From Dimorphilus gyrociliatus (taxonomy: Eukaryota; Animalia; Annelida): 64,000 nucleotides of DNA. The notes below the pieces were generated by a model. It did not search any database. It worked only from the letters and a program-made list of their open reading frames with translations, and was not told where the DNA came from. The number at the start of each line of letters is the position of its first letter. The first letter of the stretch is position 1. Location of the stretch: positions 1,423,643 to 1,487,642 of the forward strand of contig CAJFCJ010000014.1 in the NCBI GenBank assembly GCA_904063045.1, written 5' to 3'. Positions 4,774-60,265 of the stretch are shown piece after piece. A program made the translations under genes and the position numbers.

Positions 4774-6110
4774 CTTTCTTTCTTTCCCTTCTTCCTTTAT
4801 TCTCTCATATCTCTCTCGTTTAATTAATATTCGTTTGCTACATTTCCAATAAGAAGACAGTCAAGAAGATGGTAAGCTGATTTGGCACAAAAAAAAGATT
4901 AAAAAAATTGGAAAAAAGGAAGAGAAAGAGATGCCTGACCTTAACGGAGCAGTTAATCGTCAAGATTAGAAGAAGACAATTGCTTTTGGTAAATATGCAA
5001 AAGCAATTAGCATTCTAGGGGAACTAGGCTGGTATATGATGTAATACTCTACTCACTGTCTATACGGACATACAAACTGCCGATTTTGTAAATATATATG
5101 GAGTATTAAGAAAAAAATACTGCTTCCTCAGGTTACTTCCGTTTCCGGAAGAGAGATCGCCCAAGCATTTGTATAGCTTCTTCTTCTTTTTAGAGAATAT
5201 AATAAAAGTATACAGCTTAGGAAACGGAACGCAATAAGGGCTATGAGTCGGTACTCGTACTTTAGGCCTCATAACAGTTTGTCCCTACAAACAAATCAAT
5301 TTGAATTACTCTTCAACCTTCAACTTTTCCCTAATTTTCAAATTTAATTAATAATTTGTTTAAAAATAAAGAAATTAATAATTTACTTGATCAATTAATT
5401 AAATATATAAATAATAAAATAATAAATAAAAATAGACTTAATCCTCTTTACCACTTTCTCTTCTGTTTTTATCTTATTTTAAATTCTTTTTCTTTTTCTT
5501 CTTCTGCGTCTTCGTGTCTTTTTTCTTTCCTTCAAAGATAGATAATCCCAAATTATAGGCCTACTCGGTATCGAAATTACCTTATCTTAAGGATAAATTC
5601 GCATCTGTGTCACGCAATCAATTAGACTTTTGACATTCGCCTACCTCCTCTCTTGCATACGTATATGAATACCTTTTACATAGAATATCTTTTTGTTTAA
5701 TCCGTCAGATTAACGGATGTACTACATTTTTGTCAATTGAACCTAATCCATTTTAATAGCTAATTTGACTACTTTTTAATATCCACTCTCATTTTGTCTA
5801 TATTTAGAGACTCACTTAAGATTTTTTACGTACATAGATTTAGCGACATCTAGTGGATATTTGAGAAAAACTTTTGATAGGACAAACATATTTTTATTTC
5901 TATTGTAAAATTATATAGTTCTCATTTTTTTGTTATAGCATTATAATTGCATTCATTTACAGGGATTTATATAAAGTTTTAGTTTGCTTTATATGCGATA
6001 GATGGCAGTTTTTAAAGAGAGCACTTTCTTAGCATCTCAACAATAAAGTAATACACAACAGTAGGGTTAGATAAAAAGCTTCTATTTCAGTGAAATACTA
6101 AAGATAGATA

Positions 6111-54547: not shown

Positions 54548-56636
54548 ATGACGTCTCCAAATAATTCTCCAACAAACCCAACGGAGAAAGAAGTGGAAAG
54601 TGCTGAAAAAAAGAGCCGTTTTCTTCCTTACCAAGAAGGTCACTCAAAGAAGCGATTGTGTAATCGTGAAAGTGACAACTCTGAGGAAGAAAACGACAAC
54701 CAGGTTAATGTTAACCTCCCTGACAGTGAATTAAAAAATTTGGACATAGCATCAGAGAGTCAGAATGAAGATATCTTTCCAAATTTACCTTTCTGTTTAC
54801 AACAAGACGGCGAAGAAAACAATGCAGATTCACGATCAGAATCTACAATGCCTTCCCCAGGCAGAGAAGAACATGACGAAGATGTTGACGACGAAAGGGA
54901 AGACAGCCAATTAAGTACAAGTTCACTAGATACCGATAGACCCTTATTCTTGAAAGAAATTAGGTCAAAAAGAAGGAAACTTTTAATTCCCAGTGAAACT
55001 ACTAGTAGCGAACATAGTGATGATAGTGATTCTGACGATTCTAATGATTCTGACTCTAGAATAACAGATAGTAGTCCCGCAAGCGTTGAAAACGATATTT
55101 TAAAAAGCCAGAGAATATCTAAATCACTTGATAGACAATCAATTGTTAATAAATACAACTTGACAGAACTTATCTTTTGCAAAGAAACAGGAGTGAAAAA
55201 AGCAAAAACTTTCTCAAGAGATGTTATTTCACTTCAACATAACATAACTCGTTTGTCAAAATACGGATTATTGGATGAACATAATGGTTGTGTAAATGCT
55301 TTACATTTTAATGAAACAGGAACTCTTATAGCTTCAGGTAGTGATGATATGAATATAATTCTTTGGGACTGGGAAAGACTAAAACCATACGTTATTTATG
55401 GTAGTGGTCATGAAGCTAATGTATTTCAATGCAAATTCCTACCCGCTTCGAATGATTCTGTCATTATAAGCGCTGCGCGAGATGGTCAAATAAGAATAGC
55501 TGATATTAGTTCCTCAGGTACATGTAAAGGAACGCGTAGATTGGCTCGACATGAGGGACCTGCTCATAGGGTAAATAAACAATCTCCAACAAAGCGATAT
55601 GTAATTTCAACTTCCATAACAGATAACGCTATTCCATGATTCTTGTCATGAATTTTTAACTTGCGGAGAGGACGGACTAGTCTATCAAATTGACTGTAGA
55701 GAACCGAAACCAGTGAAGTAAGATTCTTTCTCGGAAATTTTCCTAATTATCCTAGAAATTTGCTTATCTTTTTTTAGATTATTGATTGTGAAAGAAGAAT
55801 CAAAGCTCATGCCTCTATATTCAATTCATGCAAATCCTATGAATTCAAATGAATTTTGTGTTGGAGGAAAAGATCCCTATATTAGAGTTTTTGATAGAAG
55901 AAAAATTAAAAGATCGAATAAAGTCCTTTCCCCCGACCCAATTAAAAAATACTGTCCACATCATCTCACAAAAAAAGATAGGGCCAATGTTACATGCGCA
56001 TGTTATAATTACGATGGTTCAGAGATCCTTGGAACATATAACGACGACGACATTTACCTTTTCAACAATAATCATTCGGATGGAGATGATTTTAAGCACA
56101 GATATTCTGGACATAGAAACAATCAAACAGTAAAAGGAGTTAATTTCTACGGACAGAGGAATGAATATATAGTCAGTGGCAGCGATTGTGGAAATATATT
56201 TTTCTGGGAGAAGGAGAGCGAGGCTATTGTTAGCTATTTTAAAGGTGATAACGGTGGGGTTGTGAATGTTCTTGAACCTCATCCAACCTTACCAGTATTA
56301 GCTACTAGCGGATTAGATAACGATGTTAAATTGTGGATGCCAAACCCTTCGGAGGACAATTCTCTAGAAGATTTAGAAGTGTTAATGGACAACAATTGGG
56401 ACGACAGAAAAGCAGATAAACGATTGATGCCATATGCAGATGATGAAAGCATGATACGGCATTTGATGAGAACTTTATCACAGAGACGAACTGTAGGCTA
56501 AAACAAAATAAAAGTAGCTTATTAAGTAATAATTGTTTATTATTTTTTTTTGCAGACTGCTGATGATTCTAGCAGGGACTGGAATATTACTGATGATGGC
56601 GACGATAGCCATCAAATACAGTGTGCCCCTCAGTGA
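54548..56636 (+). CDS. DCAF8: DDB1- and CUL4-associated factor 8 (WD40)
   Basis: Exons 54548-55570, 55623-55717, 55778-56492 and 56556-56636. Acidic N-terminus, HNGCVNALHFN, SGSDD, YSGHRNNQTVKGVNFYG, VSGSDCG, LATSGLD and a QCAPQ end. Confidence 0.93.
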
Positions 56637-57297
56637 AACTCTTCACTAAATTGAACTGCTCCATTTAGTATAAATGATTATATACAGTATATATATATTA
56701 TATTTATATATGTATTTCTGCTCGTGTATTTATGTTTATCAAATTAATATTAAAAGTTCTGTTTTGATTATAATGAGTTTATATTTTAGAAATAAATAAT
56801 GTAAAATGACTGAATATCTATAAATTTGACAGATTTTATTTTGGTAAAATATTCTTTTATCCCTTGATTTATACATTTTCTTTTCATTGAATTTAAAAAC
56901 GAAAGAAGAAACTGTATAATTACAGGTATTCTGTAATCTATAAATGTATTTTCTATGTGTCCATACAATACGTATTGTCATATGGCAGAAAACTAGTCAA
57001 TATGGTGTTCTTAAAATTGTTTATCATAAATAAAATACTTGTTTATCTCCGTTATTTAGTTTATTTTCTTAATTAAGTTTACAATAATGGTATTTCATGA
57101 TTGTTTCATTTTGTGGAGCATTTATAGAAATGACTAAAAGAAAATAGAAAAATAGCGTAGTGTGAGAGAAATAATCATCAGGAGTCTTTTATTTAGTCTA
57201 TAGACACTATTGCAAAAATAAATACTGTACAGGTGAAAACGGTACAAATAACAACAAACTAATTATTTGATAAAAAATTGAAACTATAAAACAATAT

Positions 57298-58338
57298 CTA
57301 TGGAGGTAAGTGACGTGGTTCAAAATTTGCTTTAAATAAACGCTTCTCAGCCGGCTCCTCAATATCCATAAAGTTCTCAACGCTATTAAAGTATTTGTTT
57401 AAAATATCATATTGCTTAACTGACACAAAATCATCCAGATTGTCCGTTTTAATATCTCTTAATGTTAATTTTCTTTTCCGACTACGCATACTACTGGTCA
57501 TTGATTTATAAGCAGACTCTTCGCTTGTTTCTTTACTAGAGAAAGAAAATGTTGAAGCTATTTCTAAATTTAAAGACCAATCATCATTTGAACTTGAAGA
57601 GCTATTATCATGTAATGCTTGGTCTTTAATTGTGACCTTTTCTAAGTTTGTATTGATGTCTGAATCTTCATCTATTTTGCATACATATTCCTCAATGCTT
57701 TTAAAATATCGATCTAAGTTGTTGATTTTCTTTTGATGCATAGTGAAAACATCTACATTATCCTCAGAAGTAAGATCTTTTAGAGAGAATATATTATCAC
57801 TTTCTACAGATTTGCTATCGTCTTCTGAACTTTCCCAAATAGAATCAATAGATTCTTCGTCAGAGGTTGCACTCGAAGTTGAACTTCCAATTGTTTCCTC
57901 ACCAGATGATCTTTTTGAAATATCTTCATCTATACTAAAATTTCCCAATCTTGGTAAGACTGAAGTTATCCTCTTTCCGAATTTCCAATGGTCTGTCCTA
58001 TTCGTTAAAAATCCTATTATGAAAGAAACATTAAAATATATATTATCAAATAGAATCATTTCCCTTACCATTATCTTCACAAATTCTTAAACTATCTATG
58101 TCCACGACGTCGGAGGAGGTAAACTCATGATTATACTGAAAAAGGCGCGTAAGATTTATAATAACACTTGTATTATCGCTCACAAATTTAAAATTAAATT
58201 TTGAACTTGACCTGAAAAGTTATTAAATATTAGAATAAGTTCAATCTTTACCTTTTTACAAATTTTATCAAGATTGGCTAAGTAGAAATCTTTTAGAAAG
58301 ATATCTGGTTTGATGATATTATCTCCTCCTGAAGCCAT
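57298..58338 (-). CDS. Candidate Scm3/HJURP-like CENP-A chaperone, 289 aa
   Basis: Exons 58338-58252, 58135-58069 and 58013-57298 (870 nt). The spliced N-terminus LDKICKK|YNHEFTSSDVVDIDSLRICEDN|GFL matches the Scm3 domain pattern. Confidence 0.7.
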
Positions 58339-58429
58339 GTACGCTAAAAATAGGCTCGCATTTAAATTTGACCCGACTGTTTTTTGCCGTTTTCTTAGAC
58401 AACGTAGTTGGAACGTATAAACGATAAAT
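58339..58429. promoter_or_regulatory. Ultra-short (91 bp) divergent intergenic region
   Basis: Lies between the ATG at 58338 (-) and the ATG at 58430 (+). Confidence 0.55.
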
Positions 58430-60265
58430 ATGGGGAAAAAGAAAAAATCAAAGCATAGGCATCGTTCTTCCAGTGATTCTGACGAACTAAGTGAAAAAAT
58501 AGATCGAATGAATTACAAGAAAATGTTAAAATTAAAGGAACAACGTCGAAGGGAGAAAGAAGAACTGAAAGCGACTGAATCAATTGAAGAGAAACGTCGT
58601 AGACGTATGGAAAAGAAGGAGGCCAAAGAGAGGAAAAAGAAGGCTGCAATGGGTTGGACAGAGGAAGATTTACGCTATTCGAATACGGAAAACCCTTTCG
58701 GAGATGATAAGCTGTTGGAGCCATTTGTTTGGCAAAAGAAGATAAAGGCTGAGGGAAAAGAGTCCTTACAAGAGCAAGAAATAGAAAAAATGACTCGAGA
58801 GAAGATGATTGAAAATAAAGCTGAACTTGAAAAAGTTCGAAGACGAAGGATGGAAAGAGAAAGACAAATAGAAGAAATGGCAAGTCAAAGAGAAATGTTA
58901 CAGAGAGAAAAGGAAGCGGATTATTATAAAGCTTGGGAAAAGCAAGAGGATGACTTCCATCTGAAGCAGGCAAGACTTAGATCTGAAATAAGAATAAAAG
59001 ACGGTCGAGCAAAGCCTATCGATATTTTAGCAAAATATCTTACTCTAGAGGATGACGAATGTTCCTTAAACATAAATATGCAAAAACCGCACTCATTATT
59101 AGTGGGATTATCAGTTTCCGATCTACTGGATTTACAAGAGGATATAAAAATTTATTTGGAATTAGAGGAAGGGAAAAATCAGCAATATTGGAGAGATTTA
59201 TTGGTTGTAGCAGAAGATGAACTATCCACGGCTCGTACTGCGGAGGCGTATGGCAGTTTTACAAGAGACAGGTCGTCAGGTTTAAATCAAACTGTTAATG
59301 AAGACGTCGAAAAAATTTTTAGGGGCAAAAGTCTCAGGCAATTAGAGTTATTACGTGATGAAATATCTACGAAACTTCAGAAACCTAATGAAGGGGTTGA
59401 TACAGGTTATTGGGAAAGTTTGCAAGTACGACTAAAAACGTACGTTGCAAAACAAAGATTAACCGAAAAGCATGATGAGGTGATGAAAAAACGTTTGTTA
59501 AAGATTAAGGAAGAGCAAGGATTAAGGAACAGCCCTATTGAAAAAGTCGAACAAGACAGGAATACTCCTTCTCCTGAGCCTAGTCAGGATGAAAACCCTC
59601 AGAGGGAAGAAGACGAAGAAGTCGATGATAATCCCTATCGAGAATATGAATTAGGAAATTTTTCTCCCACTTTTTTGAGACCTCAAGATTTAGATGCAGA
59701 AATTTATGTCGTTGATGAAGAGGAGGATTATAGAAATTTATTGAAAGCTAGAATGCGTCTCCAGACGACTGGCTCAACTGCACTTACTGAGGCAGAGAGA
59801 GAATTTGAAAAGAAAGCTAGAGAAGGAATGGATGGGGCTGAAGCTATTTTCGGGGTGGAATACGCTCTTACCAAACAGTCTGCAGCTTGGAATGATAAAT
59901 ATCGGCCAAGAAAGCCAAGATTTTTCAACAGAGTTCACACAGGATTCGAATGGAATAAATATAATCAAACTCATTATGACATGGATAATCCACCACCAAA
60001 AGTTGTACAGGGTTACAAGTTTAACATCTTTTTCCCTGATTTAATAGATAAAAGAAAACCCCCAAATTACTCGATAACAACGATTCCTGGTGAACAAGAC
60101 TTTTGCGTTTTAAGATTTACAGCCGGTCCACCATATGAAGACATCGCTTTTAAAATAGTTAATCGAGATTGGGAAACAAGTTTTAAAAGAGGTTTTAGAT
60201 GTCAATTTGTAAATAACATTTTCCAATTGTGGTTTCACTTTAAGAAAATGAGATATCGCCGATAA
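58430..60265 (+). CDS. CACTIN: Cactin, intronless
   Basis: Contains NPFGD..L..PFVW.KK, EDDFHLKQARLRSEIRIKDGRAKPID, KYRPRKPRFFNRVHTGFEWNKYNQTHYDMDNPPPKVVQGYKFNIF and FQLWFHFKKMRYRR. Confidence 0.98.
   Translation: MGKKKKSKHRHRSSSDSDELSEKIDRMNYKKMLKLKEQRRREKEELKATESIEEKRRRRMEKKEAKERKKKAAMGWTEEDLRYSNTENPFGDDKLLEPFVWQKKIKAEGKESLQEQEIEKMTREKMIENKAELEKVRRRRMERERQIEEMASQREMLQREKEADYYKAWEKQEDDFHLKQARLRSEIRIKDGRAKPIDILAKYLTLEDDECSLNINMQKPHSLLVGLSVSDLLDLQEDIKIYLELEEGKNQQYWRDLLVVAEDELSTARTAEAYGSFTRDRSSGLNQTVNEDVEKIFRGKSLRQLELLRDEISTKLQKPNEGVDTGYWESLQVRLKTYVAKQRLTEKHDEVMKKRLLKIKEEQGLRNSPIEKVEQDRNTPSPEPSQDENPQREEDEEVDDNPYREYELGNFSPTFLRPQDLDAEIYVVDEEEDYRNLLKARMRLQTTGSTALTEAEREFEKKAREGMDGAEAIFGVEYALTKQSAAWNDKYRPRKPRFFNRVHTGFEWNKYNQTHYDMDNPPPKVVQGYKFNIFFPDLIDKRKPPNYSITTIPGEQDFCVLRFTAGPPYEDIAFKIVNRDWETSFKRGFRCQFVNNIFQLWFHFKKMRYRR

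Follow-up and report, generated by a model that had tools for sequence, protein, structure and literature searches.

A three-exon gene of the annelid Dimorphilus gyrociliatus encodes a candidate Scm3/HJURP-family loader of the centromeric histone

Which protein delivers the centromeric histone to the centromeres of the tiny marine annelid Dimorphilus gyrociliatus? For this animal, a study of annelid histones reports a conserved single-copy cenH3 with high expression during cleavage (PMC12153100). The question is raised by a locus in a stretch of 64,000 nucleotides of AT-rich eukaryotic DNA from scaffold CAJFCJ010000014.1 of the D. gyrociliatus assembly GCA_904063045.1 (the whole of this stretch is called the window, and positions refer to it unless a locus handle is given). 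The list of open reading frames contains only three disconnected pieces at this place, of 52, 45 and 260 amino acids, and conceals the Scm3 domain, as the initial annotation had pointed out. By joining three exons at GT-AG sites, that annotation arrived at a CENP-A chaperone whose K-Y and EDN-G elements are both created by the splice junctions. Our analysis makes it probable, judged by the sequence of the spliced product, that the gene does encode the Scm3/HJURP-family chaperone of D. gyrociliatus (DgyrCDS9999, 289 aa), and it is very probably this protein that loads the centromere histone in this species.

The gene is located on the minus strand and starts with the ATG at 58338 (see Table 1 for all coordinates). 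Exon 1 codes for an amphipathic helix and for the lysine of the KY motif, the product of exon 2, YNHEFTSSDVVDIDSLRICEDN, is the core of the Scm3 match, and exon 3 encodes an acidic, serine-rich and mostly disordered polypeptide. The sequences at the boundaries are AAG/GTAAAG at the end of exon 1, TTTCAG/TAT between intron 1 and exon 2, AATG/GTAAGG at the end of exon 2 and ATAATAG/GA between intron 2 and exon 3. The first junction falls exactly between K29 and Y30, and the second one cuts the codon of G52 into G and GA; thus, both elements are indeed generated by splicing. The spliced coding sequence of 870 nt is in frame and gives 289 amino acids and a stop codon. Its product has the N-terminus written in the initial annotation, and it is letter-identical to the deposited protein CAD5121494.1 / A0A7I8W017 "DgyrCDS9999" (P0001). 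The expectation that the protein would be found annotated as hypothetical was right in substance: the product name is just the locus tag, even though the Pfam family PF10384 has already been precomputed for the protein in a public collection.

Is the three-exon gene real, or is it an artefact of annotation or assembly, with the acidic ORF of 260 amino acids as the only genuine coding sequence? We found no point in support of an artefact, and the evidence from transcripts refutes it. The region 56900-58900 of the window was compared with contigs from two sequencing runs, each belonging to an independent study. A 288-nt contig of run X1 (RNA-seq, labelled coral metatranscriptome) contains both junctions, and so does a 3771-nt contig of run X2 (2017, "organism A", from the second study). 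The contigs skip 116 and 55 nt, with the ends CT..AC on the plus strand that correspond to GT..AG on the strand of the gene, and they have zero mismatches to the window. Run X2, the type of which is not on record, is read as cDNA because its contig lacks both introns. Moreover, the exons are conserved and the introns diverged in a relative of D. gyrociliatus (see below), leaving the artefact with practically no probability. We conclude that DgyrCDS9999 is a real, expressed three-exon gene. The X2 contig continues through the gap that separates DgyrCDS9999 from the divergently oriented cactin gene and on into cactin; this shows an overlap or merging of two head-to-head transcripts rather than a single RNA. 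As a separate observation, the contigs of the coral metatranscriptome X1 are identical to D. gyrociliatus at positions 57895-58353 and 58607-58900, that is in both DgyrCDS9999 and cactin; presumably, D. gyrociliatus or a near-identical strain was living in the coral sample or in the aquarium.

Table 1. Coordinates of DgyrCDS9999, its features, its neighbours and its relatives. Positions with a locus handle (L) refer to that locus, all others to the window.
Feature	Position	Strand	Remarks
Exon 1	58252..58338	-	87 nt, 29 codons, phase 0; Met1-Lys29, MASGGDNIIKPDIFLKDFYLANLDKICKK
Intron 1	58136..58251	-	116 nt, GTAAAG..TTTCAG, phase 0
Exon 2	58069..58135	-	67 nt; Tyr30-Asn51 and first base of the Gly52 codon
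Intron 2	58014..58068	-	55 nt, GTAAGG..ATAATAG, phase 1
Exon 3	57298..58013	-	rest of Gly52 to Pro289; stop codon 57300-57298
3' UTR	57099..57297	-	extent given by the reach of the X2 contig (contig piece 57099-58012); AATAAA at 57193-57188 (motif scan)
Scm3 domain, coding span	58000..58311	-	residues about 10-56, both introns included
Repeat R1	57673..57786	-	residues 128-165, SLKDLTSEDNVDVFTMHQKKINNLDRYFKSIEEYVCKI
Basic patch SRKRK	57469..57483	-	residues 229-233
Repeat R2	57352..57468	-	residues 234-272, LTLRDIKTDNLDDFVSVKQYDILNKYFNSVENFMDIEEP
Head-to-head gap	58339..58429		91 bp between the ATG of DgyrCDS9999 and the ATG of cactin
cactin	58430-60265	+	ORF and Pfam
Exon 1 of the orthologue in the relative	L002:4413-4499		87 nt
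Paralogue B	L011:3001-4226		scaffold CAJFCJ010000009.1; DgyrCDS7477 (P0006), 253 aa; adjoins a PPR gene
Paralogue B, conserved first exon	L011:3220-3318		99 nt, MASEDNQ...
Paralogue B in the relative	L007:3450-4462
Paralogue C	L001:4697-5618		scaffold CAJFCJ010000001.1; CAD5110897.1 (P0004), deposited 205 aa; adjoins an Arf-type GTPase gene
Paralogue C, upstream exons	L001:4697-4768 and 4872-4932		conserved in the relative
Paralogue C in the relative	L013:2722-3636

The orthologue of the relative, which was taken from Logan contigs, lies in synteny between cactin and the same WD40 genes. The two species share 86% identity in the cactin protein, and their synonymous sites are saturated. The orthologous gene has exons of 87, 67 and 716 nt; these sizes as well as both intron positions are identical in the two species, and the protein again comprises 289 amino acids and can be aligned without gaps. 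Its introns of 114 and 48 nt have GT..AG ends and are diverged, and intron 1 contains in-frame stop codons. At the nucleotide level, the identity to the relative is 84% in exon 1, 69% in intron 1 and 59% in intron 2. At the level of amino acids, it reaches 83% in exon 1 and 91% in exon 2, as compared to 68% for residues 61-289 and 30% for the linker formed by residues 166-200. Since the synonymous sites are saturated between both species, constraint is expressed as dN only rather than as a dN/dS ratio: dN is 0.049 for the Scm3 domain (residues 10-56), 0.199 for residues 61-289, 0.587 for the linker and 0.087 for the neighbouring gene cactin. Constraint is thus strongest in the Scm3 domain, in a protein that evolves fast elsewhere, and such a combination is the pattern described for HJURP.

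The head-to-head arrangement with cactin is found in the relative as well, there with a gap of 90 bp. Blocks such as ACGG[CT]AAAAAACA and TGCGAGCCTA..TTTAGCGTA in this gap are conserved despite the saturation of the synonymous sites, and the gap is presumed to be a shared bidirectional promoter of DgyrCDS9999 and cactin. A cell-cycle element of the CHR type was considered for this promoter and dropped, since a TTTAAA motif occurs in the D. gyrociliatus sequence and has no conserved counterpart in the relative. On the other side, tail to tail with DgyrCDS9999, there are two WD40 ORFs of 363 and 239 amino acids on the plus strand (54548-56501). The public annotation has one product of 637 amino acids at this place, and the two ORFs are evidently exons of one WD40-repeat gene, which is the same neighbour as in the relative.

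How good is the evidence for an Scm3 domain? Residues 1-75 of DgyrCDS9999 match the Pfam profile Scm3 (PF10384) with 31.7 bits (E 1.2e-7), and the N-terminus of the relative's protein reaches 32.0 bits; the gathering cut-off of the family is 24.3 bits. The profile search envisaged in the initial annotation is thus positive in both species. The alignment extends over residues 23-55 of 289 (33 residues) and over positions 16-49 of the 53 profile positions. With 29.4 bits, the whole protein of 289 amino acids is above the cut-off, too. The ORF of exon 2 alone scores 20.9 bits (E 3e-4), which is below the cut-off, and the ORFs of exons 1 and 3, taken singly, give no score with PF10384. The idea that the signature becomes visible only after splicing is therefore correct in so far as the threshold is passed only by the spliced product, but exon 2 by itself already gives a match below it.

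Moreover, the individual elements of the domain can be read in the sequence. According to the description by Hollis et al. 2026 (PMC13322267), scm3 domains are characterized by (i) a helix with hydrophobic residues spaced three to four positions apart, (ii) the dipeptide KY, in contact with a conserved glutamate in helix alpha-2 of CENP-A, (iii) a subsequent stretch in which E/D residues alternate with I/L/V residues, forming a beta strand together with the CATD, and (iv) a DXGXL motif, which is ancestral and relaxed in metazoans. All four features are legible in DgyrCDS9999, in the right order and with the right spacing: the helix covers residues 12-29, with the hydrophobic positions F14, F18, L23, I26 and Y30 at a distance of three to four residues; the KY dipeptide is K29-Y30; the alternating acidic and hydrophobic stretch is D38-VVDID-43; and the DXGXL motif reads D50-N-G-F-L54. 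The domain is N-terminal, and the remainder of the protein is largely disordered and polar, belongs to no Pfam family and yields models of low confidence.

It might be argued that the resemblance to Scm3 is due to chance, and that DgyrCDS9999 belongs to an unrelated, lineage-restricted family of acidic and disordered nuclear proteins defined by its twin repeats. The match spans no more than 33 residues, and a phmmer search of all PDB chain sequences with the whole protein and with residues 1-75, at E values up to 10, reached no Scm3, HJURP or CAL1 chain, so that the assignment to the family rests on the one profile match. The PDB matches at E 0.4-6 (an archaeal OB-fold protein and macrodomains of alphavirus nsP3) were rejected as noise. 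In addition, an exhaustive phmmer search of 1.84 billion representatives found the dinophilid family alone, with 4 proteins, and the family includes paralogues with the same C-terminus and without a detectable Scm3 domain. A word-indexed search with residues 1-75 recovered just the query, and NCBIfam gave no match to the protein, as expected for a eukaryotic protein. Several observations speak against chance. First, the scores exceed a curated cut-off in two species, with E values of about 1e-7. Second, four independent features of the signature occur in the correct order and spacing, and the domain has the N-terminal position typical of the family. Third, this very region is the most constrained one. 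Finally, when residues 1-75 are compared to the ESM Atlas, the two closest structure clusters (TM by query 0.54 and 0.47) contain nothing but PF10384 proteins, the nearest neighbours being Scm3 clusters from Ascomycota; these neighbours are to be taken as a lead, not as a test. An AlphaFold2 model of the monomer (residues 1-80) computed without an alignment was unusable, with a pLDDT of 43.5. A poor model is not surprising for a domain whose folding takes place on its partner, yet it also provides no support. Taken together, a chance match appears very improbable to us, and we favour a genuine Scm3-type domain.

What does the rest of the protein contribute? Residues 57-127 are acidic and rich in serine. 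They are followed by two related repeats, R1 and R2, and outside the Scm3 domain no other block is as conserved as R2. BLASTP aligns R1 with R2 over 35 amino acids (34% identity, 71% positives, E value 5e-4), and a comparison of six-sequence profiles with hhalign gives a probability of 91% (E 1e-6). Both repeats conform to the pattern L-x-D-[LI]-x(3)-[DN]-[LV]-D-x-F ... L-[DN]-[RK]-Y-F-x-S-[IV]-E-x-[YF], and residues D152, Y154, F155, S157 and Y161 of R1 are invariant among the paralogues compared. Directly before R2, the sequence RKRK is invariant in all members of the family, and the SRKRK patch is a possible nuclear localisation signal. The AlphaFold2 model of residues 118-289, based on six sequences, has one helix in each repeat at low confidence (pLDDT 54.4); like the model of residues 1-80, it is of too low a quality for a fold search. 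With residues 53-289, a Pfam search at E values up to 10 found no family, including HJURP_mid (PF12346) and HJURP_C (PF12347). The neighbours of the C-terminal half in the ESM Atlas, fragments of BRCA1 at 0.79 with TM values of 0.33 or below, are at chance level and were discarded. Since human HJURP possesses two interchangeable repeats that bind Mis18 (PMC6731319), and since CAL1 and NEFR-1 have conserved C-terminal motifs, we infer that R1 and R2 may target the protein to a centromere receptor. Any link to the R1 and R2 repeats of vertebrate HJURP would be one of analogy only, as there is no detectable homology.

The genome of D. gyrociliatus encodes two further members of the family, paralogues B and C, and in each of them half of the Scm3 domain is degenerate. 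All three copies (DgyrCDS9999 being copy A) have a syntenic counterpart in the relative, agree in their exon phases (0, then 1) and share the twin repeats. Paralogue B has kept the beta half of the domain (SPDTFDIENLKICED; FDIENLKICED) and has QT in place of KY and no DXGXL motif. Its 99-nt first exon is conserved in both species and not used by the deposited model, DgyrCDS7477, which starts upstream with MKTPLFDCRV; in the relative, this start does not lie in frame. The PLFDCRV stretch upstream of B (L011:3001-3040, and about 3150-3200 of L007) is conserved as DNA without conservation of the frame, possibly as an element of a promoter or of a 5' UTR. In paralogue C, the two upstream exons add a basic helix (MAERNK..KIKMK/YKLN..) with the KY dipeptide exactly on the junction of exons 1 and 2, and a polar stretch is present where the beta strand is expected. 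The deposited model of C is probably truncated at its N-terminus; here, as for the first exon of B, the gene model is based on sequence and conservation. A scan of the N-termini of the spliced D. gyrociliatus model of C and of the relative's spliced B with the Scm3 profile gave no match, and no Pfam domain is recorded in the public collection for the deposited DgyrCDS7477.

The existence of this family suggests another possibility, namely that the Scm3-type domain of DgyrCDS9999 is genuine and the protein is nevertheless not the main cenH3 loader but one of three specialised members, for example with a role in the germline or in early cleavage, with another H3 variant as its client, or with loading being shared with, or carried out by, B or C. 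The maintenance of all three paralogues in conserved synteny in two divergent species would fit with such a division of labour, and there is a precedent in mosquitoes, in which Cal1 paralogues are co-retained with Cid paralogues (as cited in PMC13322267). On the other hand, copy A alone passes the Scm3 profile among the N-termini that were scanned, KY and the helix pattern are missing from B, just as the beta stretch and DXGXL are from C, and the cenH3 gene of this species is reported to be single-copy (PMC12153100). We therefore regard a specialised, secondary role of DgyrCDS9999 as unlikely and prefer its assignment as the loader. As for B and C, it is tempting to speculate that in this compact genome, with a three-gene family derived from HJURP and a single cenH3, the half-domain copies compete for the centromere receptor or act as partial chaperones. 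This is a tentative idea to which we give a rather low probability; if true, the half-domain copies would represent a new way of tuning cenH3 loading. In B and C, whose half-domains complement each other, the Scm3 domain has been dissected naturally, and a three-gene family of this kind is the part of our results that could surprise the specialist, the mosquito Cal1 paralogues mentioned in PMC13322267 being a partial precedent.

How might DgyrCDS9999 work as a loader? Binding and deposition of cenH3 by this protein, like a targeting role of its repeats, are predictions. In our working model, the N-terminal domain would fold onto the cenH3-H4 dimer: its amphipathic helix, with K29-Y30 at the end, would pack against helix alpha-2 of cenH3, the stretch DVVDID..LRI would pair with the histone as a beta strand, and DNGFL would close the domain. 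Bound in this way, the cenH3-H4 dimer could be held soluble and off the DNA until its delivery. The acidic, serine-rich middle part would serve as a disordered linker, and R1 and R2, beside the RKRK patch, may guide the protein into the nucleus and from there to the centromere receptor. By analogy to the repeats of human HJURP and to the C-terminus of CAL1, a Mis18-type licensing complex or CENP-C are candidates for this receptor.

The Scm3/HJURP family is known, and DgyrCDS9999 adds a member to it rather than another family. The novelty that was implied in the initial annotation is overstated in this respect: orthologues of HJURP have already been reported for most metazoan lineages, including the protein ELT94853.1 of the annelid Capitella teleta (Hollis et al. 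2026, PMC13322267). Our literature search retrieved no paper naming the Dimorphilus gene, and neither Dimorphilus nor Capitella is mentioned in the supplementary text files of PMC13322267, to which its table S1 of representative metazoan candidates does not belong. The present work provides a named candidate for the cenH3 loader of D. gyrociliatus, an annelid kept in the laboratory whose genome is among the smallest of any animal. It also raises to two the number of annelids in the recent picture of HJURP conservation across the animals, the domain of the added one being unusually canonical. With 289 amino acids, a delimited domain and two short repeats, the protein is a compact subject for the study of centromere targeting by a minimal metazoan HJURP. 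Finally, the locus illustrates that a reading of ORFs alone conceals the Scm3 domain; standard gene prediction had recovered DgyrCDS9999 already.

Human HJURP is a protein of 748 amino acids, and its structure in complex with CENP-A and H4 has been determined (3R45). DgyrCDS9999 resembles it in the overall order of its parts: an N-terminal Scm3 domain is followed by disordered sequence and then by two related C-terminal repeats. However, with 289 amino acids the Dimorphilus protein differs in size, it has no match to HJURP_mid or HJURP_C, and the two proteins have no pairwise similarity detectable with phmmer. The repeats of Dimorphilus are helical motifs of about 35 amino acids with no detectable sequence relation to the human R1 and R2. 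The fungal Scm3 proteins are represented by those of Saccharomyces cerevisiae, Kluyveromyces lactis (2YFV/2L5A) and Schizosaccharomyces pombe. With them, DgyrCDS9999 shares the small size and the signature of helix, KY, beta strand and DXGXL, whereas it is devoid of the Myb-like domain and of the C-terminal features of the fungal proteins. Moreover, unlike the fungal genes, the Dimorphilus gene has two introns, one interrupting it precisely at KY and the other at the glycine of DXGXL.

Among animals, CAL1 of Drosophila and NEFR-1 of C. elegans are diverged orthologues of HJURP according to PMC13322267. As in these proteins, a chaperone domain is combined with a separately conserved C-terminal motif in DgyrCDS9999; the motif of CAL1 binds CENP-C, and a corresponding targeting function in Dimorphilus is conceivable. 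Paralogues exist as they do for the mosquito Cal1. In contrast, the scm3 domains of CAL1 and NEFR-1 are far more diverged, and constraint on KY has been lost in a subset of the dipterans as described in PMC13322267, whereas copy A of Dimorphilus is canonical. Like the metazoan HJURPs as they are portrayed in PMC13322267, DgyrCDS9999 is a short and fast-evolving protein, polar and for the most part disordered, which carries its scm3 domain at the N-terminus; further shared traits are the KY dipeptide, the alternating acidic and hydrophobic stretch, the reported co-occurrence with cenH3 and the little similarity outside of the domain. The Dimorphilus protein passes the Pfam threshold directly, whereas PSI-BLAST, with an E value of 4e-3, was needed for the Capitella candidate (PMC13322267). 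Unlike the metazoan HJURPs described there, for which DXGXL is reported to be relaxed on the metazoan branch, Dimorphilus has retained this motif as DNGFL.
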